Virus record (IMG/VR): IMGVR_UViG_3300023049_000005
Span: 206,757-270,756 of that record
DNA length: 64,000 nt
Direction: 5' to 3' (one strand)
In this document: in pieces, positions 20,888 to 51,466 of the stretch
Layout: every line of letters starts with the position of its first letter
How positions within the stretch are numbered: position 1 is the first letter of the stretch
The notes under the pieces: model-generated
What the model was told of the DNA's origin: nothing
The model's database searches: none
Seen by the model: the letters and a program-made list of their open reading frames with translations, nothing else
Program-made: the position numbers and the translations under genes

Positions 20888-21202
20888 TTATCCTCTAGGG
20901 AATTTATCTTTATATATCCAAGGAAACTCCTTTTTGAGTTCTTCCTTTTCCCTTTCTCTGTATTCGTTTAATTTCTTTTTCACTTCATCGCTATCAGTAG
21001 TATCTAATACTTCAACTACCTCAACATTTTTTACTGATATAGATCTCCAATATGACCCATCTGTTAAATATACCCTAGTATCATTTTTTAACCAATGTGT
21101 AGGAACTGCAAAATGATCATGTATAAATCCTGTTATCGGAATCTTTCTTCTGATGATAGATGTTGATCCACTGAAATTTTCTAATAGTTTAATGTATTTC
21201 AT
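20888..21202 (-). CDS. Small tagged protein (MKYIKLLENFS)
   Basis: Late promoter at 21207-21215. Confidence 0.7.
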   Translation of the reverse strand: MKYIKLLENFSGSTSIIRRKIPITGFIHDHFAVPTHWLKNDTRVYLTDGSYWRSISVKNVEVVEVLDTTDSDEVKKKLNEYREREKEELKKEFPWIYKDKFPRG

Positions 21203-23358: not shown

Positions 23359-25788
23359 ATGAAATTTATTTTACAGAAAGAAAATTTACAACAAGCAAGA
23401 AGTATATTAAAAAAATTAGATATCACAGAAGATGATGTTAGATTCAAAGACCTCAAAGAATATTACGAAGAAAGATTAGGTAATAATTGGGGGTATTTTG
23501 GTTTCTTAACTAATCTTATTTTTAAACAAGGTGAGCATTTAAGTTCAGTTAAAAAGTTAATAGATTTCATTGTTGATGATAAAGATATCATAAAGAGTTT
23601 ACCAAAAAACATAATTAAATATACTAGTATAGAAAAGATATCAGATGATATTACTATACAATTGGAATGGAGAAAATACAGACAAGAATTCGTCAATGAA
23701 CTTTCGGGTAAAATAAAAACACTAGCTAAAAAAGATGAAGATCTTAAAAACGAATACATTAATAGTGATGAAAATACTAAGAAAGATATTTTACAAAATT
23801 TCATTCCTAAAATAGCTAGATATACGGACTATAGAAAATTTAAATCAGATCTAAAATCATTTTTGAATAAAACAGATGATATCGAAACCATTATTAAAGA
23901 TATTAAGAATCAAGAACACGCATATTTAGTATACAACGAAAATAATGTTGTTATAGCGGAAATATATAAATATGAAGCATCTTGTAAATTAGGATCTAAA
24001 GCATGGTGTATATCTACGGAAAAATTCCATTGGAATGATTATGTCAGTGGTATGAATAAACAATATTTTATTTGGAATTTAAATGTTCCTAAATCAAGTA
24101 ATGAAAGTCAAGTAGGTGTTACAATAAAGGAAGATGGTACAGTAAGAACTGCTCATTATAAAAATGACAAAAGAGCATCTATTGAATTATATTTAACTAA
24201 ATATAATATACCCACCGAAGTACTTACTCCTATTGATATAAATAAAGATTTTAGTAAATTAGAAAAAGCAGACCGTTTAGATGAAGGCGTATTCACTAAT
24301 CTGATAAAAAGTGATAACAAAGAACTTATTAAAAAATATTACGATATTATACCAAATAGATTAAAGATTAAATATAATTTATATAATGAAGAAGAATTAA
24401 GTAAAATGAATTTATCTGATACTACTAAAGAAGTACTTAGTTCGGATAACAGTAAGATTAAAAGAATAGTTAATTATCTAAGTCTTGAAGAAATTCTTAA
24501 TTCTGAGGAAAGAAAATTCGTCGATAAGATGACATTCGTCGATAAAATATATTTTCTTAAAAAAGCGATGACACTTAATTTAGACTACGGTAGTGATTTC
24601 CATGAATCTAATATAACAGAAAAGTTGTTTCCTAATACTGATGTATATACCATAGACTTTGATGAAGAATTAATTTATGTTAAAGGGGAGGAGAAAGATC
24701 AATTTTTTGATGAATTTCTTGGTATGTATACTGAGACATACCATCATTTAAATTCTATCACTACACATAGTAGTATGTATAGTGATACAGAGGAAATTAA
24801 TTTTTGTTATAATGCTCTAACGTCTGACCAAGGGTTAGAATTTATGGAAGTTTTAGAGTTCTTAGAAAAGAATTCATACCACGAAAAACTAAAAGAATAT
24901 TTCACAAAATTTATTAAGACGTATACTGATAATAATGGGATTGAATATTATGACGTTGAATCATTTTTCTTAAAAGTAGGTTTAAAAGAAGTGTTCGAAG
25001 TATTAGAATTATGTTCTAGTGCAATAGAAGAAGGCGCAGATCAATATATCTCAGAAGATATGCAATTATTTTCTGACCTAGAAAATAAGTTTGATTTTGA
25101 TAGTTTTAATATCGGAATAGGTATTCCAATAGATTTAATTATTGATTCATTTGATGATAAGGAATTAACAGACGAAGGTTTTGATTATGATAATTGGGTT
25201 AATAACACTCCGTTATCTAATCAAGTTCCTGCATTTAATTCAGAAGAGGGAACTTATGAATATTATAGTATGGCTCAAGTATCAGAAGAATATAAAGAAA
25301 AAATTGATAATCAATTAGAAAAATTAACAAGTGATCTTGAATTTGAATTAGCTGAATTTTTAGAAATGAATAACGAAAAAGTACATAATGCTTTAATTGA
25401 CAATGGATATGTTGGTGATACAGAAAGTGGTTGGCAATATGAAGAATTCTTTTTTTATAGAAAAACCAAAGGTGATATAGTTAGTATCATACCAATAGAA
25501 AGTATCATAGAAAACGGTAATGCCGTAATGTACATAATGGAAACTAAAGTTTTTAAGGAAGAATTACGCATTCTTAAAAATATAAATATAGTTACTGATG
25601 GTAGTGAGGAAAAACCAAATAGATGGGGGAGTAGTGAAAAAGAGCTTAATAGTAAAAACATCAATGTTAAACAGATTAACATCTTTGATCGCTTTGAAGA
25701 AAGAACTAAAGACCCTAACCAACTTAGTCTATTTGAAGAAAAGTTAATAATTAATTTCAAAAAGTTTAAACAAAGGAAGAGTATTTAA
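23359..25788 (+). CDS. Large protein with CxLGSxxWCI module (paralog 2 of 3); C-terminal QLSLF
   Basis: ASCKLGSKAWCIS...QYFIWN...SQVGVT...AHYKND; AAATATATAG promoter-like motif upstream. Confidence 0.75.
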   Translation: MKFILQKENLQQARSILKKLDITEDDVRFKDLKEYYEERLGNNWGYFGFLTNLIFKQGEHLSSVKKLIDFIVDDKDIIKSLPKNIIKYTSIEKISDDITIQLEWRKYRQEFVNELSGKIKTLAKKDEDLKNEYINSDENTKKDILQNFIPKIARYTDYRKFKSDLKSFLNKTDDIETIIKDIKNQEHAYLVYNENNVVIAEIYKYEASCKLGSKAWCISTEKFHWNDYVSGMNKQYFIWNLNVPKSSNESQVGVTIKEDGTVRTAHYKNDKRASIELYLTKYNIPTEVLTPIDINKDFSKLEKADRLDEGVFTNLIKSDNKELIKKYYDIIPNRLKIKYNLYNEEELSKMNLSDTTKEVLSSDNSKIKRIVNYLSLEEILNSEERKFVDKMTFVDKIYFLKKAMTLNLDYGSDFHESNITEKLFPNTDVYTIDFDEELIYVKGEEKDQFFDEFLGMYTETYHHLNSITTHSSMYSDTEEINFCYNALTSDQGLEFMEVLEFLEKNSYHEKLKEYFTKFIKTYTDNNGIEYYDVESFFLKVGLKEVFEVLELCSSAIEEGADQYISEDMQLFSDLENKFDFDSFNIGIGIPIDLIIDSFDDKELTDEGFDYDNWVNNTPLSNQVPAFNSEEGTYEYYSMAQVSEEYKEKIDNQLEKLTSDLEFELAEFLEMNNEKVHNALIDNGYVGDTESGWQYEEFFFYRKTKGDIVSIIPIESIIENGNAVMYIMETKVFKEELRILKNINIVTDGSEEKPNRWGSSEKELNSKNINVKQINIFDRFEERTKDPNQLSLFEEKLIINFKKFKQRKSI

Positions 25789-27088: not shown

Positions 27089-30000
27089 ATGAGTAACAGT
27101 ATTCAAGAAACATATAGTTCAGCACTAGTAAACTATTCAGAGCCTAGAACAATTAACGGTGTACATTACACGAGGTTTTACACAGAATTCAACACTGAAT
27201 TGTCTGTAGGTGATTTCGTGTATATCTTAAATGGTAATTATGATAATACTGATTTACTTAACATCAACGAATATCAACAAGGAACAACGGGCTATGAAGT
27301 ATTAGAGATCGATAGAAATTCGATAACTTTAGATATCTTATATAGAGATGAAGATCCGTGGAACGAAGACCCATTCGCTGATTATACTAAAGTATATTTA
27401 GTTGATAATATCCAAAAATTTAATTATGAAAATATAGATAACTCGTTTGGTTTCGAAGGTCAAAGTGGGGATAAATACAGTATATTTAATAACAATGTTT
27501 TCTTATCTCAAATAGAGGATATGGAATATACCCAAGAAACAGGAACTAACCAAAGATTTTTTAAGTCTTTCTTTGATCCCGAACGTACTTTAGGTATGGT
27601 CGATATGAGAGGACAATTATTTAATGATTCCACGGAATTAAAATTCGATCTAGAAGAACTAACCGAATATAGTTTAGTTGAGCCTAACGGGGCATCAGGT
27701 AGTACATATGCTAGGTTTTCTAGTGGGCAGAATAATATAAGAGATTTTGATATAGTAACACAAGTTGATTATAGTACAGATGAAATAATAGAGAGATTAA
27801 TATCACTTAACTCATCTAATTCAGCTACTAATACAGTCAATTTATGGACACTTAATAAAAACACATTAGATGGTATAGGTGATGTTACACTAAGAAATAG
27901 TTTAAATACAGAAGATGTGAGTGCTAATATAGTATCCCCTTTTATTAAAAAAGACGGATTGGGGGCATTTTCGGGTAGTCTTATTGATATTAGATTACCG
28001 AAATATTCAGGTAGTACATATAATTATATAAGTTCTCAATCAGGGGGTGCTATATTAGGTAATACTTCAAGAACTTATACACTTAGAGATATAAATCAAA
28101 CAGTAATAGTGGGATATGATGATCCTACTTTTGAAAACAATTATAGAGCATTTGGTTTTTATAATTCTTCGGATCTATTGTCTGATAAATTTATATCACC
28201 TGATTCACAGGATGATAGTTGGACAATTGCTAACGGTCAGGGATATATAGACGGTAATACACAGTCTACTCCATATTTTGCTTTGTCGTCAGGTTTAACA
28301 GGGTCTTATAATTATACAGGCGACTTTGTTTTCCCACAACGACAAATTGGAGGATTTAGGGTATATGGAAATATAGTACCACCATACGCAGAATATAGTG
28401 GTATAGGTAGAGCAGTTCAAATAGAAACAAATACGTGGAATAATTCAGTAGAGGATTCTACACACCATGAGTTAGTTTTTGCGGGAACAGGACTTACATC
28501 ATCAGTCGATCCATTACAAGGAGGTGCTTATTTTTATTCATATGGAGGCGTTTGGCGTGATTATGATAGTATCTATAATGGTAATAAAATGTTAGGTAAT
28601 GCGTTTGAGCTTTCTAAAACAACTTTTGATGAATATAAAACAGGGAGTTGGTCACAGTCTAGTTTTAACCCATTTGGTGATTTTGATGATTACCCGTTCG
28701 CAGATTTAAAAGATATTAAATTCTTAGGATACGAGAAGAAAGATTTTGGATTAAATATCTATTATGATAGTGCAGGTACACCTGTTAATACGTTTTCGGC
28801 TCTTACTTTTGCTTTACCTACTTTCGGTGGTATTGGTGGTGGTGAAACTTTTGCTTTACCATCGGAATTCGAATCTAATGGAGTATATTATTCTAGGTAC
28901 TTAGTAATTACTGAAAGTGGTACTTCTTATATAATAAATTTATTATTTAACAGTGTTCTTTTAGCGGTAAATACTGATTTCTTAACTGATATGCAGAATG
29001 GATTACCACAAGTACATGTAGTAATACAAGAAATAGACACTGATCTTAGCCAACCAACAGAAATCGGAGTGCAAAGGAATTTAAACGTTTTTGATTTCCC
29101 TGAATTAATAGGGGGGGATTATCCAATTGTGTCTATATACGGAACACATTCTTATTATGATCCTATAAGCGGAACATTTTCGGGGTTTGACTTTAGTGAT
29201 ATTAATATAAGTACTATTGATTTTAGTGACCAAAGATGGCTAATAGGTAGCTCTGAACTAAGCCCAAGGTTAAGTAATTCTTCTCTTTTATCAACAGATG
29301 CAAACCAAGGTGTTTATGTTTTTGATAGATCAATAAATGATACTACTTATGAGTTTAGTATAACAACAACTACTGAATTTGATACAGGTGATACTTTACC
29401 TTCAAACAAAATATATAAAATATTAGGAGAGGTTATAAATAATAAGAGAAGAGTTTGGGTAGCTACGAACACAGGTCTATTTATGTTTGATTATGATCTA
29501 GCATATACTTTTGATTATTATTTTAGAGTAAATTTTGATGATAATGAAATAGAACTAGATGAATCATTATATAAGAATGACAGACTTTATGTGATGGAAG
29601 AATTCACGTATGATGGAAGATTATTCGAAAAAGATAAAATATATCGTCATTTAAAAGACGAAAAAAGATGGGTAAGGGATACTACATACGAAAGATCGTA
29701 TTTAACTAAAGCTCACATGAAAGATGGTACTATATTAGAAGGTGTCTTCAATGATGGTATCTTCGGTAATAAAAACACTGTTGCAAATTGGGAAGGGGCT
29801 ACTTGGAGAAATGGGATAGTTTATAATGTGGATTGGGATAGTGGTACAATGAGTTCTAAATCTGATATTATATTAAGACAAAATTATTATGCTACGTTAG
29901 ATAATAGCAAAGTTAAGATAAGTACTGATTTTACTAACAATGAAGGATATGGTTATAATTTAGTTAATTTCTCTACACTTAAAACGGGTGATGTCTTAAA

Positions 30001-33000
30001 TGGAACAATATTAAATACAACAATTGGGTTAACTGTAAGTAGTAGATTATTGGATGATACGTATAATGGATTATCGTTTAGTTATAACGATTTAGAAATT
30101 GTTAGATCTAAGATAGAAAATTCTACTACGAATGCGATACAACTTGGTAATTCTATGGTTAGTAGATCAGATCTAAATTCTACTTTTGTTAATGATGCTC
30201 AATTGATTAATAATAATGTATATGATAGTATAATAAATGATGCAACAATAGAAAACCAAGGTAATATTAAGATATTAGGATACGAAAAATGGTTTAATAT
30301 CAGAACTAAAACGGAACAACAGGATATATTACAAATTCATAAATTCTTTATTAACGAAAAGGATTTTAGTAAGTTATCATATGAAGATTGGGTAGTTTTC
30401 AATAACGTGCAGTTAAGTAATAATAACCCGTCTAACATACTCGATAGACTGTTCTATGTCTTAGGTGGAGCTGATGGATATTACCAAGATGTATATGAAG
30501 ATTTAAATAGAATATTTAATAATAAGTATAGAGAGAATAATTTTAAGATATTTATTTCTAAACGATTAGAAACACAGAATAGACAAAGAACTAATATTAG
30601 ATATAATGGTGTTCAGTTAGTTGTAGATACTGCAGAGAACGAAAGTCCTATGTATTCTATTGATTTAAATATAGTAACTAATGAAATACCATATAATTCT
30701 GATTCGAGTATTTATTTAAATGCTTTAGAAAATGATGGTATACTTAAAGTAAATGCTACTAATATAAGTAAAGCGGTTTTACAGAATTACCATTTTAAAA
30801 ATAGTTGGATTAATGGTGGTACTTGGTTAAATGGTTCTATGATACAACCTGATCAGTTAAATAGTTTATATAATTATGGGTCAGTTTCTTCTACCACTAA
30901 TAGTGTTACAGTTGATTTATATGATAATAATTATGAGATAAAGTCTTCTGATATACTTGATAATGAAGTTGTACATATAAATAACATATGGGATAGTAAT
31001 TTCTTAACGTATAGTGGTGGTGATTTTATGATCGTATCAGGAACAACATCAAGAGTTTTAGAACCGTATGGTGATTTCGCAACAAACGCAACACTATCTG
31101 TTCCTATGAGTCAATATACTACACTTAATTTAAATAGAATTGACGGAGTAAATAATAATTTATCAATTGTAAGTGGTGTATTTAAGAACCAAAGTTTTTC
31201 TAATTTAAGTATACAAAACGAAGAATTAGATGTAAGAAATTTAAATTATCAGAATATTAGAAACTTAATGGTTATAAATTCTGAAATCACAAAGAGAGAT
31301 AATTTAGAGATACAAGATATATTCTTAGGATATGGACATGTCTCAAATGACTTTACTAGCAAAGAAGAATTTGGTTTAGATCTTATATCATATAAACAAA
31401 CATTAACAAACGTAAATGTTTTTGATGGTATAGTTACTAAGTCTGCTTTCATATCAGGTACATTCTCTGATGGTATATTTACTAATAATCGTTACAGAGA
31501 TATCAATGATTTGATTCCTATTAACAATAGAACCTATGCACCAACACAAAGTGCTGTGATATCTTCATGGCATTTCGGTAATTTCCTAAACGGGGAAGTT
31601 TCTGATTCAACTTGGTTGAATGGTACATTCTCTAATGGAATATTCTTAAATAGTGAATTCTTAGGTGGTATTTGGTCAAATGGTGAGTTTGGTGATATAT
31701 CAGGTAGACCAACTCTTAACTTATTTAGAAAGGGGTTGTGGTTAAATGGTGCTTTTAATAATGGAATATTTGGCGATGATGATAAAGAAGTTGGTACGAT
31801 AAATAGTATTTATACTAATAATAAGTATATTTTAGAAAGTAATATTTATACTAAAGAAGGAACAAATATATGGGAGAAAGGTAATTTCAACAATGGTGTT
31901 TTAACTTCTATTAATAATAATGTAACAATATGGAGAGACGGTAAATTTAACAATGGTAAAGTAAGTGGGTCTGTTATTTGGTATGATGGTATATTTAATA
32001 ACGGTAAATATAGTTCTAGATACGGTAGACAAGTAGCTAACGTAGCAGGTGAAGTGGATTTATTAAGTCTTGCGGATAGTTCATTAGCAGACGGATCGAG
32101 AACATTAAACTTAAATGGTATAACAGCTTCTTTCCCCTTCTTAGATCAATATAGTATTGCTTCTATTAGAGATATCAATGCTAATAATCCAAACCTATTT
32201 GATAACGCAGGAACGATTGTTCTTGATACTAGTGATAATCAATTAAAGTTCGGTTATGTTTCTTCTACTACAAGTAATACAGTGCTTGATCCATTTGATA
32301 CTAACTTATCTTCACATGGTTTCACTGAAAAGGCTGCTGATGATTTCTTTACGGGTACTATATCAAATTTATATATGCAGTTCAAACCATTAGATTACGA
32401 AGCAATTGGGACAAGTGTACACCCACTTAAAAATGCTAACATATTAGGTGCTAAGATATTCGTTCAAGATACTTCAAATGAATATATTTATGATGGATCA
32501 AGTTATGTTACTCAATCTAATTTCTTATCTGCTACAATAAGTGGCACATCGTTAACATTCAGTAGTTATTATTCTTGGAGAAATGGTGTATTCAATAACG
32601 GTGAATTTGGATTAGCGGATAATCCAAATAATATAAACCCATCATGGGAAAACGGTACTTTCAACGGTGGTGTTTTTAATGGTAAAGTTTGGAAAAATGG
32701 AACATTCGTAAAGGGTAAATTTAATGGTTCGGGTACAAATCAGTTACAAACTAGTAGTACAAATATATTTAAGGGTTATGACCCACAAGCAAGTATAGAA
32801 GAATATATCGATGATTATAGTCTATCTTTTATAGCAGCACAAAACCAAGGACAAGGATCATATAAAGTTATTTTAGATAAATATGATTGGTATGGTGTGT
32901 GGTTAAATGGTGAGGTTTCACCAAATATTAGTGGACTTAGTGTTGTTTTATCTAATTTAGAAAGCGCAGTATCTAACGTAACACCCAATTTAAGTTTTGG

Positions 33001-36000
33001 GTTAGAATCCGCATTTGCTCCTTCTGCTACTAACACATCTGTTTCCAATGCTCTTTCTAATAATTCAGGTTTATTGACAAACACATCAGTTCTTTCTAGT
33101 CCTGTTAGAGAAAATATACTTGTTGAATATTTCAACGAAGATAAATATAATAGAAGAATTAATAAAAGACCCATATTCGATAAAATGATATGGGTAAACG
33201 GTATATTTAATAACGCAGACGGAGAATTTAATGAAAGTGTTTGGCTTAGTGGTACTATGAAAAACGGTACATTTAGAAATTCTATGTTCAACCCATATGT
33301 ACAAAGATGGGATTTCGAAACAGGTGATTTAAATAATATAGAATTTAAATTTGACTTAGATACTGAGAACACTATATGGGAGAACGGAACATTTGATAGT
33401 GGTATATTCTTTTTCTCTGATTGGGAGAACGGAACATTCGAAAATGGTGTAATGATGGGTGGTAACTTTAAGGCAGGTAGAGCTAATTATATGTCTGCAT
33501 ATTCTTCTATTTGGGAAGGTGGTAGATTTAGAAATGGTAATTGGTTCGGGTCTAACTTTACGTTTGATAATATTTACAACGATCCATCTATACCCAATCC
33601 TTTTGAGTACTTACGTAATTATTTTGCTAATGTTCAATTTGCTCCTTTCGTAACAGATATTTTAGGTAATAATAGTAAGAGATTACAGGATGATAGATTA
33701 CATATATGGAATATAATAGAAGGTGATATTACTAATAGTGTTTATAATATAACAGGTCATAGTTTTGGTACTGATAGTGGATCACAAATAATCAATAACG
33801 GAACAGTAGATGTGAATAACACATACAGCTTTACTGATATATCAACTAGCCCCGCATCGGGTATATATAGATTGGAATTAAGTATATCACAAACACCAAT
33901 TGTTTTCTCTACATATGACTATATTGTGAATTTCACATTAGTTGACCAAAAGAGATATGATGAAGGGGTGTACGAAATTACTTTTTATACCGATGGTAAT
34001 ATTTGGAGTCCTATTCCAATAGTAAACAGCACGGTGTTTGAATTATATGCTGATATATACGAAAACGGTATATTAATCGAACCTGATGTATTACTAAAAC
34101 AAATCCCAATAGGTAGTTATAAGAATGTTAGGAAAACCTTTGAGGTATTAGAAAATCAAGAATATGTACTTAAAATAGAAGCCCGAATGAGTGTAGATAA
34201 TGGTACTTACACGGAGAGTTATTACTTAGCAATAGAAGAAGTAGTGGCTGAGGTTGTTTACTCAAATAAAAATAATGATCTAGAAGGGTCAATAGAATTA
34301 AATTGGGAAGGTTCATACTTAAATTCTACTGCTTCGACTGCTAGTGCTTCATTAACTTATACAAATACATTAAGTTTAGAAGATACTATTCGTTATACAG
34401 GTTTAGATGTATCTACTATAAGTATACCTACTGTATATAAAGATTATTCAAGTGCGTATTCTCAATTTGGAAACGGTACTTTCCAATCAGGTATATTTGA
34501 AAACGGAATATGGAACAACGGATATAGGGGAACAGAATACGGTCTTTATATAATAGAAGACGGTGATGTTTATCCTGGGGCGACATTAAGTTATGTTCAT
34601 TTGGGTGGTTCTTCGTCTATAGTAGAAACTAATCCATTATATAGCGATGTCCCTCAAGTTAAATATAGAACAGAACCAATTGTGTATTTTAACAGAGTAC
34701 AAAGAAGCTTTAAAGTAGGAAGAAGAAGATGGAGATTCGTTTTAGAAAGTGCTTTTGATATTGATGCTGCTAATAATACAGAAGAATATAATAGATTAAG
34801 AGTAAGTGATCAAGTGTCTATTTCTAATATAATAGCAATAGATATTAATGGTAATAGAAAATTAATTAAAGATGTATTTAGAATAATTAGAATACCAAGT
34901 AGAACTAGAATAGTAGTAGAGTATCAAGAAACTTTCCCTATCGATAGTATCCAAATAGATAGCGATAGACACTTAATTGCGGTTAGTAAAAACGTATGGT
35001 TTAATGGTGCTTTCTTAAATGGGTATTTTAAAGGTAATATGATAAACGGATTTGTTAGAGGAAATAGAAATATCACCAAGATAGAAGACTCTCAATTAAT
35101 AGACGTTGACTTCCAAGGTGGGCATTTTGTGAGTAAGAAATACACACTTAGTAGTATATTCGATACAAGAACATCCAATTCGTTAAGTTTATCTCCACAA
35201 TTCACAGAGAAATATAATAGCTTATATCATAGTGGATTAATACAAAATATGACATTCGATGATGATGTTACTTTAACCAATTATGGGTTATATTCCACAG
35301 AAGGAGTAAAAATAAACGGAAATGGGATTGGTGATCCTAAGAATGTAACTTTTGGTGCTACGGCAGTTTCGGAAGCACTTCAATATATCTATAATAGTGA
35401 CATGGATCTAGTGTATGAACCTGAATATTATAGTAGTGTATTTAACCAAAATATTATCAATACACATGCTATAAACGAATTGGAAATTGGTGAGTTCATC
35501 CCCACTAAACTATATAACATACCTGCGGGTTATATTACTTATGATGTATTAAATAGTGTATCTAATTTTAAATATTCGACTGAGCCAAATAACATTGAGG
35601 GGGTAATAGAATATAAATTAAGTTTAGGATCTAAATATAAAATATTTAATGATTTATTTAATGTTGATTTTTCACAAAGTCCAAATAATGATCCTGATAT
35701 AGATGCACCATCTACTTTTAATATAGTGGAATCAGCAACATATGGTATATTCAGACAAGGATCTATATCTAATGGTATCAATTTTAACCAACTAGAATCA
35801 CAATTTATACACGAAGACTTTATGTATATATTTGATACTAGTAGTAATGTTACAGAAAAAATAACAGGGAACAATACGTTTAAACTTAGAAATAGATATC
35901 ACTTAGTAGAAGTAGATGTAGAATTTACTAATAAAACAGTACCCAATCCTTATGTTATAACTAATACCGTTACTATAGGCACTACATATAGTTATGGTAC

Positions 36001-36661
36001 ATTCTCACTACCTAAATTAAGTATAGGGCAAGCCTATAACGAATATTTTGAAAATATTAATTTAGGTGGAACAAGTGGTTATATATCATCTTATGATAAT
36101 GATATGGTCGGATTTATTGATGGGACAAAATTAAGTGAGATAAATAATTTTGGAAATATTGGTGATACTAAACGATTAACCATGAAGTCATTTATGTATA
36201 ATAACTTTGGTGGGTATAGAGATTCAGTGAGAGTTATAGAAAAGGGCTTTAATGTTGATATAGGTTCAACCAGTAGCGAATATACAGTTAATTCTCCAAT
36301 TTATTATAAATTTAATCATTATGAGATAGATAAAATTCCTTTTTATGATTATAGAAGTTATATTGATCCATTAAGTGGTGAGGTAACAGATTGGAATATG
36401 TTAGCAAACCAAGATCAAACTAGAAAAATAGATGATAGGATTAAAACACCTTTCTATGCTTCTTCTGTTCCTATTAATTATCAAGACTCTAATTTTGTAT
36501 TAACTGATAATATAAATTTCTTAGGTGGTTCTAATATAACAGGTAATGTGATTATTGAAGAAGTAGATACATTATCAACAGCTACTATACAAGAATTATT
36601 AGATTTACTTGCTGCTAATAAACAATTTAATTTTGGTGGTGGTGGTCCTCAATCATTATAA
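27089..36661 (+). CDS. Giant (3190 aa) probable virion structural protein with WxNGxFxNG pentapeptide-like repeats
   Basis: Late promoter at 27062-27070; many WxxGxFxxG repeats; N/S/T/G-rich; no Cys seen in the translation. Confidence 0.65.
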   Translation: MSNSIQETYSSALVNYSEPRTINGVHYTRFYTEFNTELSVGDFVYILNGNYDNTDLLNINEYQQGTTGYEVLEIDRNSITLDILYRDEDPWNEDPFADYTKVYLVDNIQKFNYENIDNSFGFEGQSGDKYSIFNNNVFLSQIEDMEYTQETGTNQRFFKSFFDPERTLGMVDMRGQLFNDSTELKFDLEELTEYSLVEPNGASGSTYARFSSGQNNIRDFDIVTQVDYSTDEIIERLISLNSSNSATNTVNLWTLNKNTLDGIGDVTLRNSLNTEDVSANIVSPFIKKDGLGAFSGSLIDIRLPKYSGSTYNYISSQSGGAILGNTSRTYTLRDINQTVIVGYDDPTFENNYRAFGFYNSSDLLSDKFISPDSQDDSWTIANGQGYIDGNTQSTPYFALSSGLTGSYNYTGDFVFPQRQIGGFRVYGNIVPPYAEYSGIGRAVQIETNTWNNSVEDSTHHELVFAGTGLTSSVDPLQGGAYFYSYGGVWRDYDSIYNGNKMLGNAFELSKTTFDEYKTGSWSQSSFNPFGDFDDYPFADLKDIKFLGYEKKDFGLNIYYDSAGTPVNTFSALTFALPTFGGIGGGETFALPSEFESNGVYYSRYLVITESGTSYIINLLFNSVLLAVNTDFLTDMQNGLPQVHVVIQEIDTDLSQPTEIGVQRNLNVFDFPELIGGDYPIVSIYGTHSYYDPISGTFSGFDFSDINISTIDFSDQRWLIGSSELSPRLSNSSLLSTDANQGVYVFDRSINDTTYEFSITTTTEFDTGDTLPSNKIYKILGEVINNKRRVWVATNTGLFMFDYDLAYTFDYYFRVNFDDNEIELDESLYKNDRLYVMEEFTYDGRLFEKDKIYRHLKDEKRWVRDTTYERSYLTKAHMKDGTILEGVFNDGIFGNKNTVANWEGATWRNGIVYNVDWDSGTMSSKSDIILRQNYYATLDNSKVKISTDFTNNEGYGYNLVNFSTLKTGDVLNGTILNTTIGLTVSSRLLDDTYNGLSFSYNDLEIVRSKIENSTTNAIQLGNSMVSRSDLNSTFVNDAQLINNNVYDSIINDATIENQGNIKILGYEKWFNIRTKTEQQDILQIHKFFINEKDFSKLSYEDWVVFNNVQLSNNNPSNILDRLFYVLGGADGYYQDVYEDLNRIFNNKYRENNFKIFISKRLETQNRQRTNIRYNGVQLVVDTAENESPMYSIDLNIVTNEIPYNSDSSIYLNALENDGILKVNATNISKAVLQNYHFKNSWINGGTWLNGSMIQPDQLNSLYNYGSVSSTTNSVTVDLYDNNYEIKSSDILDNEVVHINNIWDSNFLTYSGGDFMIVSGTTSRVLEPYGDFATNATLSVPMSQYTTLNLNRIDGVNNNLSIVSGVFKNQSFSNLSIQNEELDVRNLNYQNIRNLMVINSEITKRDNLEIQDIFLGYGHVSNDFTSKEEFGLDLISYKQTLTNVNVFDGIVTKSAFISGTFSDGIFTNNRYRDINDLIPINNRTYAPTQSAVISSWHFGNFLNGEVSDSTWLNGTFSNGIFLNSEFLGGIWSNGEFGDISGRPTLNLFRKGLWLNGAFNNGIFGDDDKEVGTINSIYTNNKYILESNIYTKEGTNIWEKGNFNNGVLTSINNNVTIWRDGKFNNGKVSGSVIWYDGIFNNGKYSSRYGRQVANVAGEVDLLSLADSSLADGSRTLNLNGITASFPFLDQYSIASIRDINANNPNLFDNAGTIVLDTSDNQLKFGYVSSTTSNTVLDPFDTNLSSHGFTEKAADDFFTGTISNLYMQFKPLDYEAIGTSVHPLKNANILGAKIFVQDTSNEYIYDGSSYVTQSNFLSATISGTSLTFSSYYSWRNGVFNNGEFGLADNPNNINPSWENGTFNGGVFNGKVWKNGTFVKGKFNGSGTNQLQTSSTNIFKGYDPQASIEEYIDDYSLSFIAAQNQGQGSYKVILDKYDWYGVWLNGEVSPNISGLSVVLSNLESAVSNVTPNLSFGLESAFAPSATNTSVSNALSNNSGLLTNTSVLSSPVRENILVEYFNEDKYNRRINKRPIFDKMIWVNGIFNNADGEFNESVWLSGTMKNGTFRNSMFNPYVQRWDFETGDLNNIEFKFDLDTENTIWENGTFDSGIFFFSDWENGTFENGVMMGGNFKAGRANYMSAYSSIWEGGRFRNGNWFGSNFTFDNIYNDPSIPNPFEYLRNYFANVQFAPFVTDILGNNSKRLQDDRLHIWNIIEGDITNSVYNITGHSFGTDSGSQIINNGTVDVNNTYSFTDISTSPASGIYRLELSISQTPIVFSTYDYIVNFTLVDQKRYDEGVYEITFYTDGNIWSPIPIVNSTVFELYADIYENGILIEPDVLLKQIPIGSYKNVRKTFEVLENQEYVLKIEARMSVDNGTYTESYYLAIEEVVAEVVYSNKNNDLEGSIELNWEGSYLNSTASTASASLTYTNTLSLEDTIRYTGLDVSTISIPTVYKDYSSAYSQFGNGTFQSGIFENGIWNNGYRGTEYGLYIIEDGDVYPGATLSYVHLGGSSSIVETNPLYSDVPQVKYRTEPIVYFNRVQRSFKVGRRRWRFVLESAFDIDAANNTEEYNRLRVSDQVSISNIIAIDINGNRKLIKDVFRIIRIPSRTRIVVEYQETFPIDSIQIDSDRHLIAVSKNVWFNGAFLNGYFKGNMINGFVRGNRNITKIEDSQLIDVDFQGGHFVSKKYTLSSIFDTRTSNSLSLSPQFTEKYNSLYHSGLIQNMTFDDDVTLTNYGLYSTEGVKINGNGIGDPKNVTFGATAVSEALQYIYNSDMDLVYEPEYYSSVFNQNIINTHAINELEIGEFIPTKLYNIPAGYITYDVLNSVSNFKYSTEPNNIEGVIEYKLSLGSKYKIFNDLFNVDFSQSPNNDPDIDAPSTFNIVESATYGIFRQGSISNGINFNQLESQFIHEDFMYIFDTSSNVTEKITGNNTFKLRNRYHLVEVDVEFTNKTVPNPYVITNTVTIGTTYSYGTFSLPKLSIGQAYNEYFENINLGGTSGYISSYDNDMVGFIDGTKLSEINNFGNIGDTKRLTMKSFMYNNFGGYRDSVRVIEKGFNVDIGSTSSEYTVNSPIYYKFNHYEIDKIPFYDYRSYIDPLSGEVTDWNMLANQDQTRKIDDRIKTPFYASSVPINYQDSNFVLTDNINFLGGSNITGNVIIEEVDTLSTATIQELLDLLAANKQFNFGGGGPQSL

Positions 36662-43372: not shown

Positions 43373-43434
43373 AGAGTATATATTAAATCATATATTTGTC
43401 AAAAATAAATATAAATTTAAATTATTATATTATA

Positions 43435-43899
43435 ATGTTGAACCTTTTTACTCTCCTAAAAGATAATGACTACAAATTATCCGTAGCAGAAAGTTGTACA
43501 GGTGGAAACCTACAAGCGTTTATTACATCTAGAAGTGGAGCAAGTGAAGTCTTTAGGGGTGGAATTACTTGTTACACAATTGATCAGAAGGTGAAACATT
43601 TAGGTGTGGATTGGGATTTAGCAGAAGAAGTTGATTGTGTATCATTGGAAGTAGCGGATCAAATGGCACTAGGTTGTGTTAAAATGTTTGGCACTGAGGT
43701 AGCGGCATCGACTACAGGGTATATTGAGAAGTATCTTTATTACTCTATTGTGATTAATGGTGTGGTTGAAGTTAATGGGGAAATTGATCTAAGTAATTAT
43801 AAAAATAGAAGGGAAGCACAACAAGTAGCTTCGATTGATATTATTAATGTCTTAGAAAAAACATTAGAAAGTATATACAGTCCGAATAATATTATATAA
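43435..43899 (+). CDS. cinA: CinA C-terminal domain / NMN deamidase (PncC-like)
   Basis: SVAESCTGG, SGASEVFRGG, VSxEVAxQMAxG, STTG. TATATTTG at 43391-43398 favours the ATG at 43435. Confidence 0.85.
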   Translation: MLNLFTLLKDNDYKLSVAESCTGGNLQAFITSRSGASEVFRGGITCYTIDQKVKHLGVDWDLAEEVDCVSLEVADQMALGCVKMFGTEVAASTTGYIEKYLYYSIVINGVVEVNGEIDLSNYKNRREAQQVASIDIINVLEKTLESIYSPNNII

Positions 43900-44183: not shown

Positions 44184-45350
44184 ATGAAATTTATTAAACC
44201 TAGAAGTGTTAACGAAAGTAACTCTATGGAATCTATTATACCTGATTCTATATGGGAACTAAATTCTATTTTCCAAAAAGAAGGACATAAGTTATATGTC
44301 GTTGGTGGAGCAGTAAGAGACTTTCTTAATAATGAAAAACCAAAGGATTTTGATCTAGCTACAGACGCAGAACCACAGAAGGTAATTGATATGTTGAAAC
44401 CTCATTTTAAAGTTAAGGATGAGGTACAAGGTGTTGACTTTGCTGTTGTGGTAGTTTACACAGAAGACGAACCCGATGGAATGGAGATTGCTACTTTCCG
44501 TGAAGACGTATACGGAGATAAACTTGGTAAGACAAGAAATCCTGTTATTAAATTTACGACTATTGAAAAGGACGTGGAAAGACGTGACTTAACCTTCAAT
44601 GGTCTGTTCTTCGATCTAGAAAAGAAAGAAATAATTGACTTAGTAGGTGGACAGAAAGATCTAGAAAATAAGATTACTAGATTTGTAGGTAAACCCGCAG
44701 ATAGAATAATTGAAGATCCACTTCGTATATTAAGACTATTAAGGTTTACTACTAGGTACAACTTTACTATTGAAGAAAAAACTGCTAATGCTATTAAAGA
44801 AAATGGTCACACACTTTCTATTATCACTAAGGAGAGAATTTGGGATAGTAAAAATGGTGAAGTTGTTAAAGCCTTCAAGCAAGCGAAAGACTTTCAGGAT
44901 TACGTAAACTACGTAACGGCTTTTGCGTTATGGGATAATATACTTCCTAATCTTGAAATTAATTCTGAATTAAAGAGCCAAATCAACTTACCTATTGTTG
45001 TTGTTCAATTAGTAAAAGGTAATAGTATTAAGAGTGTTCAGAAGAACCTCACTAAAAGTAAACTATCTACTGATTTAATTAATCAAGTAGTTTTTATGTT
45101 GAAACTATTAGATTTCAATAAAGAAGATATACTTAAATTCCATAGCGATAAAGTAAGGTCTAAGACGGCTGATGATACTATTGAAGAATGGATCAAGATC
45201 AATGGTCTAAAAGGTGATGTTTTAAAGTTCACTAAATTCGTTCCTACTGTTAGTGGAGAAGAAGTGATGAAAAAATTTGATATGAAACCTAGTAGAGAAT
45301 TAGGCGATAAGATCAAGGAGTTGGAAGTTATTAATTTCGAAGCTCTTTAA
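44184..45350 (+). CDS. cca: CCA-adding tRNA nucleotidyltransferase (class II)
   Basis: VGGAVRD, KDFDLAT, EIATFR, RRDLTFN, EDPLRILRLLRF, ERIW; N-terminal extension MKFIKPRSVNES. Confidence 0.9.
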   Translation: MKFIKPRSVNESNSMESIIPDSIWELNSIFQKEGHKLYVVGGAVRDFLNNEKPKDFDLATDAEPQKVIDMLKPHFKVKDEVQGVDFAVVVVYTEDEPDGMEIATFREDVYGDKLGKTRNPVIKFTTIEKDVERRDLTFNGLFFDLEKKEIIDLVGGQKDLENKITRFVGKPADRIIEDPLRILRLLRFTTRYNFTIEEKTANAIKENGHTLSIITKERIWDSKNGEVVKAFKQAKDFQDYVNYVTAFALWDNILPNLEINSELKSQINLPIVVVQLVKGNSIKSVQKNLTKSKLSTDLINQVVFMLKLLDFNKEDILKFHSDKVRSKTADDTIEEWIKINGLKGDVLKFTKFVPTVSGEEVMKKFDMKPSRELGDKIKELEVINFEAL

Positions 45351-45754: not shown

Positions 45755-45828
45755 ATGTATATTTTATAACAAATAGAATTAAAGTAGAGTTAAGAGATAG
45801 AGCTTTAAATTCTGTTACCCCAAATTGA
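45755..45828 (+). pseudogene. Collapsed remnant of a C-terminally tagged gene
   Basis: ATG TAT ATT TTA TAA (MYIL*, like MYVIL at 45352) out of frame with ITNRIKVELRDRALNSV. Confidence 0.45.
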
Positions 45829-48800
45829 ATCGGCTTTAGGTGTTCCTCTGTAAGCACCAACCTCAAATTTAAATGGTTCGCCTTTCAGATTAACTTCTAA
45901 TTCGTGTGGTAATTGTTTAAAGGTCTCAATAGATTTATTAGTATCTATTTGGTTAGGTTTTAAATACCCCTTAATTATATAAGGTAATTCCCCTTCTGTC
46001 TCTTCTAACGAATCATAGAAGTTGGATAATTGATCAAATTCTAAACACCAATGCTCACCTAGTTCTTTATCATCCAAATCAGATATATTATCTAAGAATA
46101 CTAATCGATATACTTCACCACCTTTTTTATTTAAGGTTTTAATCATATTGTTATAGTATTCCCATTCTTCTTCGGCTCTATCACCATCTTCGAATTCACT
46201 TATAAACCTTTGGTCTAATTCTTCTTTAATGAAGTCTGAATATTTTAATACAACAGATTCATTAGCTTCTCTAGGTATAAATTCATATAACCTATCGTTT
46301 AATCTTTCATTATAGTCTTCATAATCATTATCATCAAAAGAAACATAATTATTGTCACCTGAATCGGGGCTAAATTTTCCTTCCGCTTCTGTATAAGCAT
46401 TAAACATATTAGATACTTCAAATTCTTCTAATCCACTATAATCTCTTAGATTACTTAAGAAGTATTCGTTATCACACATTTCCCATATATCGGGAATCAC
46501 TTCAATGCCACCGTTAGTATATTTTATTAAACTATTATTTTTGAAATATTTTAATATTTTGTCTAATTCATTAATAGTATTATCAAACCATTTTGATCCT
46601 TGTGCATCTGCCTCAGTTTGACTATATGCTCCATTAATTGCGTCTATTATCTGATCTGCTTCGAAATCATCATAAAAATCTTCATCCTCTGTTTCATAAT
46701 CTTCCTTTAAAACTGATTCTATATCATTTCTTAATTGTCTTAATTCTGCGTCCTCGCTGTATAACTCTTGTGATTTTTTATAACTATAACTTGATTCTGT
46801 GTATTTATCAATAGCTGAGGTATTTATGTCTAATCCATCACTTTTTATTATAGATATTATATCTCTTAAATTATGAACTGTAATCTCATCAAATATACCA
46901 CTTTCTTCAAAATAATTAAAATCATTATGCCACGCATCAAACATATCATAATAATTCTCTAAAGAAAAGTTCATACCACTACTATCATATAGATCCTCTA
47001 AATCAGATAATGTTGTTTCGTATACCCACGCTTCTTCTTCCTTATCATAACTCATACCAATATTTTCATAAAAGACTTTGTTGTATTTAGTATCATGGTA
47101 TGCTAAAGATAGTAGAGCAAAACTATTACCTTCTTCTAAATATTTCTCTAATAATTCTTCATTATTTGCTATACTATATCCTATTAGTTTAACTACGTCT
47201 AAGTCCTCTGTATGGTCTTCATAATATAGTTTGTCACATAAAGTATCCATACTAGTTTCATTTAAATATTTTACAATTTGTGTATCTAATCCTATATTAT
47301 TTTTATTATACTTACTAAGGATAACTTCGTCTTTTTCGCCTGCCCAAGTAGTTAATACTCTATGTAGATTATCTGAGATATAATCTAACTGATCTTCTTC
47401 ATCATCATTTACCATTAAATATTCCCTTTTAATTAATCTATCATATTTATTGAAAAAAGAATAATAATCACCAAATGTTTCAAATGTTTTAACTTCATCA
47501 AATAATAACTCTAATAATTCACCTAAGAACATCTCTATTTCTTTTTCGAAATCATTTACAGTAGGTTTAGAAGGCATCTTGTTATAGATGTCAGATTGGT
47601 TAAAATATTTTTTCATTCCGTTAAGACCAACTTCTTTGTTATTAATCATATCATCTATCTGTTCTTGTATTTTAGGAAAATCATTAATGTCTTTTATGTT
47701 AACAATATTATCTTCTACTACTAATTTTCTTAACTGTCTAGCACTAGCATTAGACTTTACCATTTTAAGAATCACTATAATAGTAAATAGTTCTTTAATA
47801 TTATATTCTTCTTTTTTGTGTGCTTGTAATACCATACTTAGATCCAATACTAACCAAGAGAATATATACTCATTAGAGATTACATAATTTAATAATTCTT
47901 CTGTTTCTGATATAGCTTTAAGATCGGTTATAACTTTTGTTATAACTTTCCTATCTATCTTAAATTCATTAGATACGTCTCTGATATATGGATAAACTTC
48001 TTTATCTAACTTATTTATCTGTTTAATAATTCTATTTATCTCAGTTAAATCTTCTTTGTTTGATAGATACTCAGCTAATGGTTTTGTTAATTCCTTTGAG
48101 GCTATTAAGTAAAACATATCCTTATCGAATAATTTAACCGCTTCTTCTGTTTTAATTAACATAGATAAGAATTTAGGTAACTCTCTACTATTGGCTACTT
48201 GTTCAATGTTTAACATTTTCTCATATTGTTCAGATGTCAATAATTTCATATCTTCTCTGAACTCTAAGGACACAACAGACTTTTCATAAACTTCATAAAG
48301 TTTACTGTTTCCTTTTTCTAAAATATCATAAAACGCTTCGAAGTTTCTTTTACTTAACATATTATATGATGATACATATATCTCTTGTCTAGGTGAATCA
48401 ACTACTCCCGACTTTGTAACAAAGTCTATTAGTATTAAGTAACCACCATTATTCCCTGTTAAATATTCTAATATCCTTTGTTCTAAATTAGAGCTAAAAT
48501 AAAAATATGATAATACTAGTTCTAAGAATTCAACACCTATCTCTTCTGTAACTTTATGTGCGCTTATTATTTCGTATGTGTTGAATATACTTTTTAAACT
48601 TTTACCCTTAGATTCAAATCCTAAGGCATTAAAAAACAATGCTGCGTCTGTTGCGTTTTCTAATTCCTTTAAACCTTTCAATAATCCAATTAAATCATTA
48701 TAATAGAATAAAGAATTGAATAATACTTTACTGTCTTGATTATCCTCTTGGAAATATTTAAGGCTTTCTTTTGGTATGTTCACTTCTATGTCACCTATTT

Positions 48801-49842
48801 TCATTGGTTCATTTAGCTTTTCAATAGTCTTAGCTATACCATTATTCTTAGCAAACTCTATCATATCTAAAGTACCACTATTGATTTTATTATAAATTTC
48901 TTCATATTTGGATTTTAATGATCCTTTTGGTATGTCTGTCATATCATATATCCTATTTAAATCAACGGCATTATTATTTTTGTTCTGTGATCCACCATGT
49001 AAGGTTTTACCTTTAGGGTCAATAGTAATCCCAAATTCTGAGTTAGGGTTAGATGCGGGTAAGTTAAAGTTGAATATGAAATATTGTGTATTATATTTAC
49101 TTTTATCTAAATAACTATCATAATAATTATCGCTATATACTATACACCATTTTTCTGAACCTAAGTTACACACGTGTTCCTTATCACTTGTTTCTATGGC
49201 TAATATGTTATTCTGATTATATACGATATTAATATCATGTTTCTTTACGTATTCTAATACTTCTTTCTTTCTCTCATTAACATCGGATTTATTAATAAAT
49301 TTATCTAATGTATCTAGAAACTCACTGATCGAAATATCATTCTTTTCGAAATATTTCAAAGGTGTGAATAGTTTTTTGTAATCTTCTTTTAGATCCATAA
49401 AAGACAATGCAAGTTGGTTGAACTTTTCCATTCCTTCTTCTCCTAATCTATCTACTTCACTTCTCATACTACTGTATAAAGATTTGTAGAATTTTTTAAT
49501 CTTAATTTGATCTTCAAGTTGTACTATATCATCTGATATTTTTTCTAAACTATCATATTGAATTAGGTTCTTAGGAAGTTGTTTGGATATGTTTTTGTTT
49601 TCTTTATACCACTCTATTATTTCTCTAGCTTTTTCTAAGGCTCTCTCTTTGTTTTCTTCTTGGAAAATTAGTTTTGTAAAAACATAAACTAAGTTCGGGA
49701 ACTTTTTAAGTAGTTCTCTAATAGCCTCAAATATTACACTGTTGTCTTGATCGACATCAATATTATATTCCTTCTTTAAAAAAGATTTTGCTTGTTTTAT
49801 ATTCTCTTTAAGTAAATATGTGTTTTTATCTAAGATAAACAT
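45805..49842 (-). CDS. 1345-aa multidomain protein: CxLGSxxWCI module (paralog 3 of 3) plus C-terminal ART-like domain
   Basis: VCNLGSEKWCIV...QYFIFN...SEFGIT; internal NESVVLKYSDFIKEE, then VYR...LGEHWC...HELEVNL. Confidence 0.7.
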   Translation of the reverse strand: MFILDKNTYLLKENIKQAKSFLKKEYNIDVDQDNSVIFEAIRELLKKFPNLVYVFTKLIFQEENKERALEKAREIIEWYKENKNISKQLPKNLIQYDSLEKISDDIVQLEDQIKIKKFYKSLYSSMRSEVDRLGEEGMEKFNQLALSFMDLKEDYKKLFTPLKYFEKNDISISEFLDTLDKFINKSDVNERKKEVLEYVKKHDINIVYNQNNILAIETSDKEHVCNLGSEKWCIVYSDNYYDSYLDKSKYNTQYFIFNFNLPASNPNSEFGITIDPKGKTLHGGSQNKNNNAVDLNRIYDMTDIPKGSLKSKYEEIYNKINSGTLDMIEFAKNNGIAKTIEKLNEPMKIGDIEVNIPKESLKYFQEDNQDSKVLFNSLFYYNDLIGLLKGLKELENATDAALFFNALGFESKGKSLKSIFNTYEIISAHKVTEEIGVEFLELVLSYFYFSSNLEQRILEYLTGNNGGYLILIDFVTKSGVVDSPRQEIYVSSYNMLSKRNFEAFYDILEKGNSKLYEVYEKSVVSLEFREDMKLLTSEQYEKMLNIEQVANSRELPKFLSMLIKTEEAVKLFDKDMFYLIASKELTKPLAEYLSNKEDLTEINRIIKQINKLDKEVYPYIRDVSNEFKIDRKVITKVITDLKAISETEELLNYVISNEYIFSWLVLDLSMVLQAHKKEEYNIKELFTIIVILKMVKSNASARQLRKLVVEDNIVNIKDINDFPKIQEQIDDMINNKEVGLNGMKKYFNQSDIYNKMPSKPTVNDFEKEIEMFLGELLELLFDEVKTFETFGDYYSFFNKYDRLIKREYLMVNDDEEDQLDYISDNLHRVLTTWAGEKDEVILSKYNKNNIGLDTQIVKYLNETSMDTLCDKLYYEDHTEDLDVVKLIGYSIANNEELLEKYLEEGNSFALLSLAYHDTKYNKVFYENIGMSYDKEEEAWVYETTLSDLEDLYDSSGMNFSLENYYDMFDAWHNDFNYFEESGIFDEITVHNLRDIISIIKSDGLDINTSAIDKYTESSYSYKKSQELYSEDAELRQLRNDIESVLKEDYETEDEDFYDDFEADQIIDAINGAYSQTEADAQGSKWFDNTINELDKILKYFKNNSLIKYTNGGIEVIPDIWEMCDNEYFLSNLRDYSGLEEFEVSNMFNAYTEAEGKFSPDSGDNNYVSFDDNDYEDYNERLNDRLYEFIPREANESVVLKYSDFIKEELDQRFISEFEDGDRAEEEWEYYNNMIKTLNKKGGEVYRLVFLDNISDLDDKELGEHWCLEFDQLSNFYDSLEETEGELPYIIKGYLKPNQIDTNKSIETFKQLPHELEVNLKGEPFKFEVGAYRGTPKADSIWGNRI

Positions 49843-50407: not shown

Positions 50408-51466
50408 ATGTTTACTATTATGAAGATAAGAAAATTCAATGAAAAAGTGGTTGTACCCAATGCTGATAAGTTCAATATTATATCAGAAGTTAAGGATAAA
50501 TTTAAAAAAGGAGAGATCAAAGATCTACAAGAATTGAATGAGTTAACTGTTCCTCAGGGGTTTAAATTTATAAAACACTCAGAGTTCTCTGAACTAATGA
50601 AAGATGTTAAAGACGTAGCAGAAACAATGCCGAAGAAAGGCGATAGACAAATGATACCTCATGTTCTTTGGTTTATGATAATGAATAAGAAAACAAATTT
50701 GATTAATATTGTACTTGATGATAATTTCGACAATAACTTTAAATTGCACATGAATAAGTTATTAGATTTTCCTGTTTTAGTATCTATATTAAAACACGAG
50801 GATATTCATAGACAACAGATTGAAAGAATGGGTGATAGTAAATATTACATAGTAAGAGATCCTAATGACAGGAAAAAATATTTTTCTGATCCAAATGAGA
50901 TAATGGCTTTTGCTTATTCAATAATTGAGGACTTAAAAAACGATGGGTTTTCAAGAGATGAAATCTTAAATAAACTTAAAGATGGTGATTTATCTTTCTC
51001 TATGGGCAGAATGATGACAGGTGGAAGATCGTCTTTTCACCCAATATATTTTGATTATGTAGAAAATTTAGAAAAAAACAGTAAAGAATTTAAAAAATTA
51101 CAAAAATATATGTACCTTTACACCATTGAATTGTTTGACAAAGACAAGACGGAAAAAAACGTACACGATAAAATTAATTTAAACGACGAAATGAGTAAAA
51201 TTAAGAAATTTGAAGCTTTTGTAGAAAGTGTAACAGTGGCTAACCAACCACAAACAGCACCTACAAAACCAGGTGTGAAGCCTGCTGACCCTGGGACGAA
51301 GCCACAAAAGCCTAACCCAAGAAGAAGAATTAAACCAAGTGTTGACCCAAGACCAAAAGCAGAAGCAGAAGATCTTATCAATAACCTTATTGATAAATTT
51401 GATGACGAAGCTACAACTAGTGTTAAAAAAGAAATAATAGAATATTATGGCAAAAAGAATAGATAG
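50408..51466 (+). CDS. Zincin-like metallopeptidase fused to a second tagged Pro-rich peptide
   Basis: LKHEDIHRQQ...YFSDPNEIMAFA; internal MSKIKKFEAFVES at 51191, then PTKPGVKPADPGTKP; late promoter at 50389-50397. Confidence 0.65.
   Translation: MFTIMKIRKFNEKVVVPNADKFNIISEVKDKFKKGEIKDLQELNELTVPQGFKFIKHSEFSELMKDVKDVAETMPKKGDRQMIPHVLWFMIMNKKTNLINIVLDDNFDNNFKLHMNKLLDFPVLVSILKHEDIHRQQIERMGDSKYYIVRDPNDRKKYFSDPNEIMAFAYSIIEDLKNDGFSRDEILNKLKDGDLSFSMGRMMTGGRSSFHPIYFDYVENLEKNSKEFKKLQKYMYLYTIELFDKDKTEKNVHDKINLNDEMSKIKKFEAFVESVTVANQPQTAPTKPGVKPADPGTKPQKPNPRRRIKPSVDPRPKAEAEDLINNLIDKFDDEATTSVKKEIIEYYGKKNR

Follow-up and report, generated by a model that had tools for sequence, protein, structure and literature searches.

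Introduction

Phage T4 provides two of the best points of reference for the locus described here: the capsid targeting sequence (CTS) MKTYQEFIAE (PMC8442874) and Alt, a head-packaged ADP-ribosyltransferase (ART) whose two termini are both trimmed by gp21 (PMC9026906). The S77-type proteases of T4, phiKZ and SPN3US cut after Glu in x-X-E motifs, and the precursors of the phiKZ and SPN3US ejection and inner-body proteins, cut in this way, lose long propeptides, with several cuts possible per protein (PMC5694885). Polyvalent proteins are large phage proteins with effector modules that are thought to be injected with the DNA (PMC7824862). ART triads are placed on strands 1, 2 and 5; TreTu, an active ART of 113 residues, carries R on its first strand and H on its second, a strand-2 His being known in TreTu and in the H-H-h clade (PMC9825190). 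Here we analyze an open reading frame (ORF) of 1345 codons, termed P0001, within a 64,000-nucleotide stretch (positions 206,757 to 270,756) of the IMG/VR virus record IMGVR_UViG_3300023049_000005, hereafter the window. An earlier note on this DNA, made from the sequence alone, proposed that an internal tag in P0001 sets off a C-terminal ART-like domain, which the prohead protease would set free within the capsid.

A single virus contig of 270,756 bp, with ~29% guanine plus cytosine and an estimated completeness of 89%, ends with the window, which makes up its last 64 kb; genetic code 11 only was used throughout. Among the genes are one for a T4-type major capsid protein (Pfam Gp23, E 4e-30) and, adjoining it, one with a Peptidase_S77 domain, the T4-type prohead protease, which scores above the Pfam cut-off. 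Because both are encoded together in this genome, its source is, judging by gene content, a jumbo phage of ~270 kb with a gp21/gp23-type head. DNA and protein searches of GenBank phages brought up no cultured relative, and IMG/VR yielded no relatives.

A domain boundary at the internal tag

P0001 occupies positions 45805-49842 on the minus strand and consists of a carrier, a linker, a tag and an ART-like domain. The junction lies in REANESVVLKYSDFIKEEL (residues 1191-1209). The linker FIPREANES (residues 1188-1196; 46255-46281, minus) holds a Glu-Ser/Asn site, conserved among fused homologs, directly ahead of the tag VVLKYSDFIKEE (residues 1197-1208; 46219-46254, minus), which was delimited by alignment to the N-termini of stand-alone homologs and by its resemblance to a scaffold repeat. 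The remaining 137 residues (1209-1345; 45808-46218, minus) form the C-terminal ART-like domain, a member of an unannotated phage family recognized through HMMER, AlphaFold2 (AF2) modelling and structural neighbours.

The earlier note regarded positions 45805-46266, which translate to residues 1193-1345 plus the stop codon, as the remnant of a once-independent tagged gene. A word-based search with the last 156 residues of P0001 retrieved two free-standing homologs, P0002 (159 residues) and P0003 (156 residues), with 55-57% identity, and their N-termini (MDNTNNIIKYSDFILED... and MNIIKFNKFQLNE...) line up exactly with the internal tag, so that stand-alone homologs of 150-160 residues start precisely at the boundary that had been predicted. 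In-frame stops and AT-rich intergenic DNA lie upstream of the stand-alone genes, whose neighbour is divergent in four of five contigs (L001-L004). An exhaustive HMMER search assembled the C-domain family into 185 clusters at E <= 1e-3; its members are mostly free-standing proteins of 130-180 residues, and some are modules within polyvalent proteins. Among the 150 family matches listed, 112 are no longer than 260 residues, most measuring ~100-260 residues and many starting with the same kind of tag. Since most listed matches are small and many are tag-headed, sequence comparison indicates that free-standing genes are the norm and that the fusion is a derived state.

Each of the 13 fused homologs retains a tag where carrier and domain meet. 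In three further carriers (P0009, P0011 and P0013) the reading frame truly stops, one to three residues past the tag, and a convergent gene follows, while eight shorter ones terminate at ...FNDELNERLSEI-stop, just ahead of the linker, the short homologs measuring 855-938 residues. In a tree of the carrier N-terminal domain, fused and tag-ended forms make up one clade (support 91/85) that is sister to the untagged forms (94/88); on the strength of this tree, tag and domain were gained once in that carrier lineage, with later loss of the domain in some members. With small free-standing forms prevailing and fused forms confined to one carrier clade, domain capture, that is, the fusion of a once-independent gene to a carrier at its own N-terminal tag, is well supported.

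A homolog from an independent assembly, P0004, has the same length of 1345 residues and the same architecture at 67% identity and a synonymous divergence (dS) of ~1. Linker and tag together are 88% identical between the two proteins, and EANESVVLKYSDFIKEELDQRF and the tag are fully identical despite synonymous changes. The ratio of nonsynonymous to synonymous rates (dN/dS) against P0004 is 0.07 for the domain, 0.11 for linker and tag, 0.24 for the middle part and 0.10 for the N-terminal domain of the carrier, which demonstrates purifying selection on these parts of P0001. A nested gene starting at the tag was also considered and dropped because the window has no ATG, GTG or TTG start there.

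A scaffold repeat linked to the prohead protease

The protease ORF (748 residues; genome positions 97691-99937, plus; locus L024) lies outside the window and combines the S77 domain with a repeat region and a poly-acidic stretch. The repeat region strings together ten 14-residue units in tandem, whose consensus is x-[YF]-S-[DE]-Y-[IL]-A-E-[EN]-L-[DN]-K-S-I and whose core is YSEYIAE, each unit ending in I/L-A-E; at the DNA level it appears as a 42-bp period with ~9 copies at L024 885-1260. Homologs of this protease-scaffold protein number thousands of metagenomic matches, including Tara Oceans contigs, and the 34 inspected out of these thousands (P0166-P0199) all have 9-13 units. No protease homolog was found on the same contig as any carrier homolog.

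A position-specific scoring matrix (PSSM) was built only from the 14-residue units of the protease-scaffold ORF and run over the other 79,333 positions of the proteome. Its single best match is the P0001 junction KYSDFIKEELDQR, at 13.4 bits versus 9.5 for the next site, where shuffled sequences give 0.27 such sites per proteome; a match that strong in just the 20 residues of the domain boundary is very unlikely to arise by chance. With a seven-column version of the repeat matrix, the core of the T4 CTS scores 11.2 bits and the P0001 junction 9.1 bits.

The flanking Glu sites to which the earlier note drew attention are conserved. Among the 13 fused homologs, E-[S/N], in the form x-x-E-[S/N], stands directly ahead of the tag in 12, and [ILV]-x-E follows it in nine. 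In P0001 the tag is bracketed by ANE before Ser and by IKE (residues 1205-1207) before Glu. The junction tag is probably a cutting site of the head protease, and release of the domain by this protease inside the capsid is plausible.

Generic N-terminal tags of the genome

Approximately 42 of the 328 ORFs of the genome (13%) start with a broader tag, M-K-x-I-K-x-[FY]-x-x-F, and E-[S/N] frequently comes next. Examples in the window begin at 1536, 5555, 6082, 39014, 49886, 57897 and 60352 on the plus strand and at 20888-21202 on the minus strand. All eight proteins scanned from tagged ORFs are ORFans, as are the products of three more window ORFs with tag-like starts. The same tag or dialects of it (MRLLDLLEE, MKIKELLKES) also head C-domain family members from other phages.

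A generic-tag PSSM, derived from the 42 N-terminal tags, gives 9.4 and 13.2 bits for the N-termini of P0002 and P0003. The P0001 junction obtains 4.3 bits and ranks 160th among 76,133 internal positions, and shuffled proteomes contain ~151 such sites, which is the level expected by chance. Taken alone, the likeness of the junction to the generic tag is therefore not significant, and it is three independent results that give the site its meaning: the start of the stand-alone homologs, the scaffold-repeat match and the conservation against P0004. Across the proteome, internal tags are not enriched (three observed versus 1.25 expected). In the 352-residue, N-terminally tagged ORF 50408-51466, an internal Met is followed by a good tag (MSKIKKFEAFVESVT, window positions 51191-51235, plus); it scores 13.4 bits and may represent a second fusion or a nested start. 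A similar internal site of 18.9 bits is present in the genome ORF 93278-93973.

Fold and conserved motifs of the C-terminal domain

The motifs VYR, LGEHWC and HELEVNL, which the earlier note had picked out, are all present in the P0001 C-terminus and match the columns that vary least when 77 family sequences are aligned. The family pattern comprises Y-R on a first strand, G-x-H-W-[T/C/S] on a second and P-x-E-x-E entering a later one, with conservation of Y in 73/77 sequences, R in 72/77, G in 74/77, H in 64/77, W in 67/77, P in 70/75, E1314 in 69/76 and E1316 in 72/76; T, C or S follows H-W in 60 of the 77. An AF2 run with an eight-sequence alignment was not usable (mean predicted local distance difference test, pLDDT, 48.7), and the 77-sequence alignment was employed instead, giving a model with pLDDT 91.4 and a predicted template modelling score (pTM) of 0.83. 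The tag segment has low pLDDT and is accordingly regarded as lying outside the fold; it is followed by a long helix and then by an alpha/beta core whose strands occupy model residues 47-55, 69-71, 91-99, 121-124 and 130-135.

The conserved motifs fall on the predicted strands where an ART of the R-S-E-like clade would be expected to carry its active site. Y1245-R1246 (46105-46110, minus) lies within predicted strand 1 (47-55), and R1246 is a candidate NAD-binding Arg. G1262-E-H-W-C1266 (46045-46059, minus) coincides with predicted strand 2 (69-71, followed by a helix) where H-W-[T/C/S], which is not the canonical S-T-S, would stand in for the S-T-S or H member of the triad. The ExE motif P1312-H-E1314-L-E1316 (45895-45909, minus) enters predicted strand 121-124.

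Structural comparison points in the same direction, 40 of the 50 best neighbours of the model, including all of the top 30, belonging to the ART superfamily. Cholera toxin, LT, Vis or ScARP fill seven of the first 11 rows returned by Foldseek. The alignments to cholera toxin A1 and LT start so that, if ungapped, Y1245-R1246 meets Y6-R7 of the toxins. IcmQ ties for the best structural match, and the neighbours also include the NADases and NAD phosphorylases Tne2, SPN, MbcT and RES. Atlas structure searches added DRAT and PF01129 as weak leads. A PDB sequence search with the C-domain had no ART among its matches; the BTB region of GMCL1, a match at E 6e-6, was rejected, as no BTB fold occurs among the structural neighbours. 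A permissive hhalign path against ModA sets YR on WR and ExE on EQE and was given no weight.

The domain probably has an ART-like fold. ADP-ribosyltransferase or related NAD-using activity is a more tentative assignment, to which we give a little less than an even chance. Support for an ART-like domain is moderate, and so it is for the view of the family as a minimal ART-like fold marked by R, H-W-T and ExE on strands 1, 2 and 5. Part of the family is embedded in true polyvalent proteins, beside ART-PolyVal, GNAT, NUDIX, SprT, 2H, LPD23 and LPD38, a context in keeping with effectors that are injected. Outside the window, the genome encodes another member, free-standing and 229 residues long (genome 8195-8884, plus; locus L015; hmmsearch E 2e-8), where the N-terminal tag MNYLKLFENW stands ~60 residues upstream of the domain and R, W and ExE are kept.

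The carrier and its surroundings

The N-terminal domain of the carrier (residues 1-335; 48838-49842, minus), delimited by homologs that align over residues 1-330, opens with a conserved propeptide-like stretch holding L-x-E-N (MFILDKNTYLLKE followed by N). It is common to three paralogs in the same genome (phmmer E 1e-27, 2e-21 and 6e-12), located at 23359-25788 (plus) and 9712-11517 (minus) of the window and at genome 82243-84936 (plus), which have ~300 residues in common and differ in their C-terminal parts. Weak matches occur in two uncultured phages of ~640 kb (LR756502 and LR745206) in a GenBank phage search, and Pfam, PHROG and NCBIfam have no match to this domain. The middle and C-terminal part (residues 336-1187; 46282-48837, minus), bounded by the end of the short homologs, is the least conserved portion of P0001 (58% identity to P0004) and closes with the conserved YNERLNDRLYE, the motif at which the short carrier homologs truly terminate.

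The whole protein has no Pfam domain and no recognized polyvalent-protein domain, one C-terminal effector-like module being found, and blastn and tblastn searches of GenBank phages gave no match to its C-domain. Adjoining P0001 are genes for a CCA-adding or poly(A) polymerase-family enzyme (44184-45350, plus; Pfam PolyA_pol, E 1e-29) and for a CinA-like protein (43396-43899, plus), the latter label being taken from the annotation of a syntenic gene on the related contig L013. Giant ORFs of 3190, 3948, 2688 and 2106 residues are found at window 27089-36661 (plus) and at genome 165059-176905, 36587-44653 and 133127-139447, respectively.

Proposed mechanism and alternative explanations

These observations can be joined into a single scheme. 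A stand-alone family gene would have been joined in frame to the C-terminus of the carrier in one carrier clade, retaining its own N-terminal tag. The whole of P0001 would then be built into the prohead core, where the prohead protease would cut at the junction and free the small domain. The freed domain would enter the host together with the DNA and, in the manner of T4 Alt, modify a target there with the help of NAD+. Catalysis, cleavage and packaging are steps that we infer, and the account of P0001 as a fusion of a carrier and a tagged ART-like module that is cut and packaged in this manner seems to us evenly poised between right and wrong. A more ambitious form of the scheme holds that head cargo throughout this very large clade of phages is loaded through one copy of the scaffold repeat, which would co-assemble with the repeat array of the scaffold and be removed by the attached protease, and that the payload is an undescribed minimal R-H-ExE ART family, common in phages and polyvalent proteins; taken as one joint statement, it is unlikely to be correct in full. 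Given such a portable repeat unit, in-frame fusions at the unit would make polyproteins from which cleavage restores a separate carrier and payload.

Several observations weigh against the scheme. The generic tags, present on ~13% of the ORFs, would be many for head cargo, and they are not enriched for likeness to the scaffold repeat (p = 0.24). The T4 scaffold gp22 has no aromatic repeat, and neither gp22 nor gp67, gp68 or gp21 of T4 contains aromatic CTS-like repeats. No recognizable virion domain is present in the carrier. As for the domain, Foldseek, the check that the earlier note had suggested, returned no significant match, all structural scores are sub-threshold, and no profile connects the family with any ART family. 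Comparisons by hhalign give probabilities of 0.1% against ART-PolyVal and 0.2% against T4 ModA, ModB and Alt. The C-domain and the 77 family members have no Pfam, PHROG or NCBIfam match save DUF2538 (2/77, E 0.002). The fused homologs P0005 and P0008 are devoid of the Arg (VYT and VYI) and of the second Glu (ELG and KLG), so the domain can persist without them; both copies have probably lost catalysis and are kept all the same. Because of the sub-threshold scores, the null profile comparisons and the loss of Arg and Glu in two fused homologs, the domain is named here only "ART-like".

The fusion could be real and its junction never cut, the 1345-residue protein working whole in the manner of a polyvalent protein and the tag acting as a conserved linker or as a structural or docking element. 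The occurrence of the same domain within very large polyvalent proteins is in line with this, and the three carriers that keep the tag at their extreme C-terminus have nothing there to release, which suggests a role of the tag for the carrier itself. However, the Glu sites around the tag are conserved, the tag matches a protease-linked repeat that itself ends in I/L-A-E, and its region is modelled with low confidence, as a flexible segment would be; we thus consider an uncut junction rather improbable. It is similarly doubtful that the domain has an ART-like topology without being an ADP-ribosyltransferase, serving instead as a non-catalytic NAD or nucleotide binder, a protein binder such as IcmQ, an NADase or another enzyme. 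The low structural scores with IcmQ among the best, the NAD-using neighbours that are not ARTs, the missing profile link and the two homologs without R and second E would all agree with such a role, yet R, H and ExE are near-invariant in 77 diverse sequences and occupy the three strand positions that define the triad (PMC9825190).

The tag could also be a generic gene-start cassette, produced by an AT-rich translation-start bias or by a recombination boundary for module swapping, with no signal for targeting or cleavage, in which case it would only mark a recombination join in P0001. The abundance of N-terminal tags unlike the scaffold repeat, the ORFan status of all tagged proteins tested and the carrier-only forms that stop no more than three residues from the tag, as though deletions had their endpoints there, are what such a cassette would leave behind. 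Nevertheless, the internal tag is conserved as protein through synonymous changes with no start codon inside, it is retained in every fused homolog although it is no longer a gene start there, and the P0001 copy matches the scaffold repeat, making the cassette a somewhat less likely explanation than the two just considered. Nothing was found in favour of an assembly or sequencing error that lost a stop codon and merged two genes, and this is refuted by the same in-frame architecture in P0004, at dS ~1, and in another 11 fused homologs that come from independent assemblies.

If the proposal of a tagged, packaged and released module is true, it adds a new family of phage effectors, widespread and unannotated, whose active site is ART-like; the family comprises at least 185 clusters at 50% identity, is also present in polyvalent proteins and would be a candidate for host take-over or counter-defence. 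It would also offer a concrete idea of how capsid-targeting tags may recognize the scaffolding core, namely by mimicking the scaffold repeat, a recognition for which no explanation was found in the T4 literature cited here. P0001 would further be a natural case of cargo added to a head protein by tag fusion, following the same logic as the engineering of T4 for protein delivery. Should cleavage or catalysis fail, this locus would still illustrate cleanly how a domain is captured at a conserved junction.

Comparison with known systems

The minimal ART toxins TreTu and TreX of Rhs and type VI secretion systems differ from the P0001 family, which has a classical ExE where TreTu has a Trp on strand 5, comes from phage and not from a bacterial toxin locus, and has no sequence similarity to them; P0001 has neither an Rhs cage nor an adjacent immunity gene, the next ORFs being convergent or unrelated. 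Like the polyvalent proteins (Iyer et al. 2017; ART-PolyVal, PF18760), P0001 is a large phage protein, and its C-domain family occurs in bona fide members of that group, but P0001 itself does not combine the several effector or LPD domains by which they are recognized. ART-PolyVal and the C-domain co-occur as separate domains, and the former has an H-type motif. The ANE-Ser site of P0001 fits the A-x-E rule of phiKZ and SPN3US, phages of a different lineage in which a propeptide is discarded and not a conserved carrier of 1190 residues.

The closest parallels are found in T4. P0001 and Alt both belong to a head system of T4 type that includes an S77 prohead protease, and the proposal likewise envisages a particle-carried ART-type effector processed at Glu sites, Alt losing N- and C-terminal propeptides (PMC9026906) and so serving as the functional precedent. 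Alt itself starts with MELITE. The P0001 domain differs in having no detectable sequence or profile similarity to Alt, ModA or ModB, in a core of ~105 residues versus ~200 in the T4 enzymes, in its place at the C-terminus of a 1190-residue carrier behind an internal tag, and in that its packaging and activity are proposed. The P0001 tag resembles the CTS of T4 IPI-III as a peptide of ~10 residues with a core of aromatic-x-x-aromatic-I-x-E at a protease site (MKTYQEFIAE in T4, KYSDFIKE in P0001), N-terminal in the stand-alone homologs. Unlike the cargo-terminal CTS, it is internal in P0001, sits where carrier and domain were fused, has another conserved Glu site ahead of it, and matches a tandem scaffold repeat missing from T4 gp22, while the generic N-terminal tag of the genome is a different and broader motif. 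In relation to known systems, this locus is a variation on the Alt and CTS theme of T4, combined with a new ART-like family.

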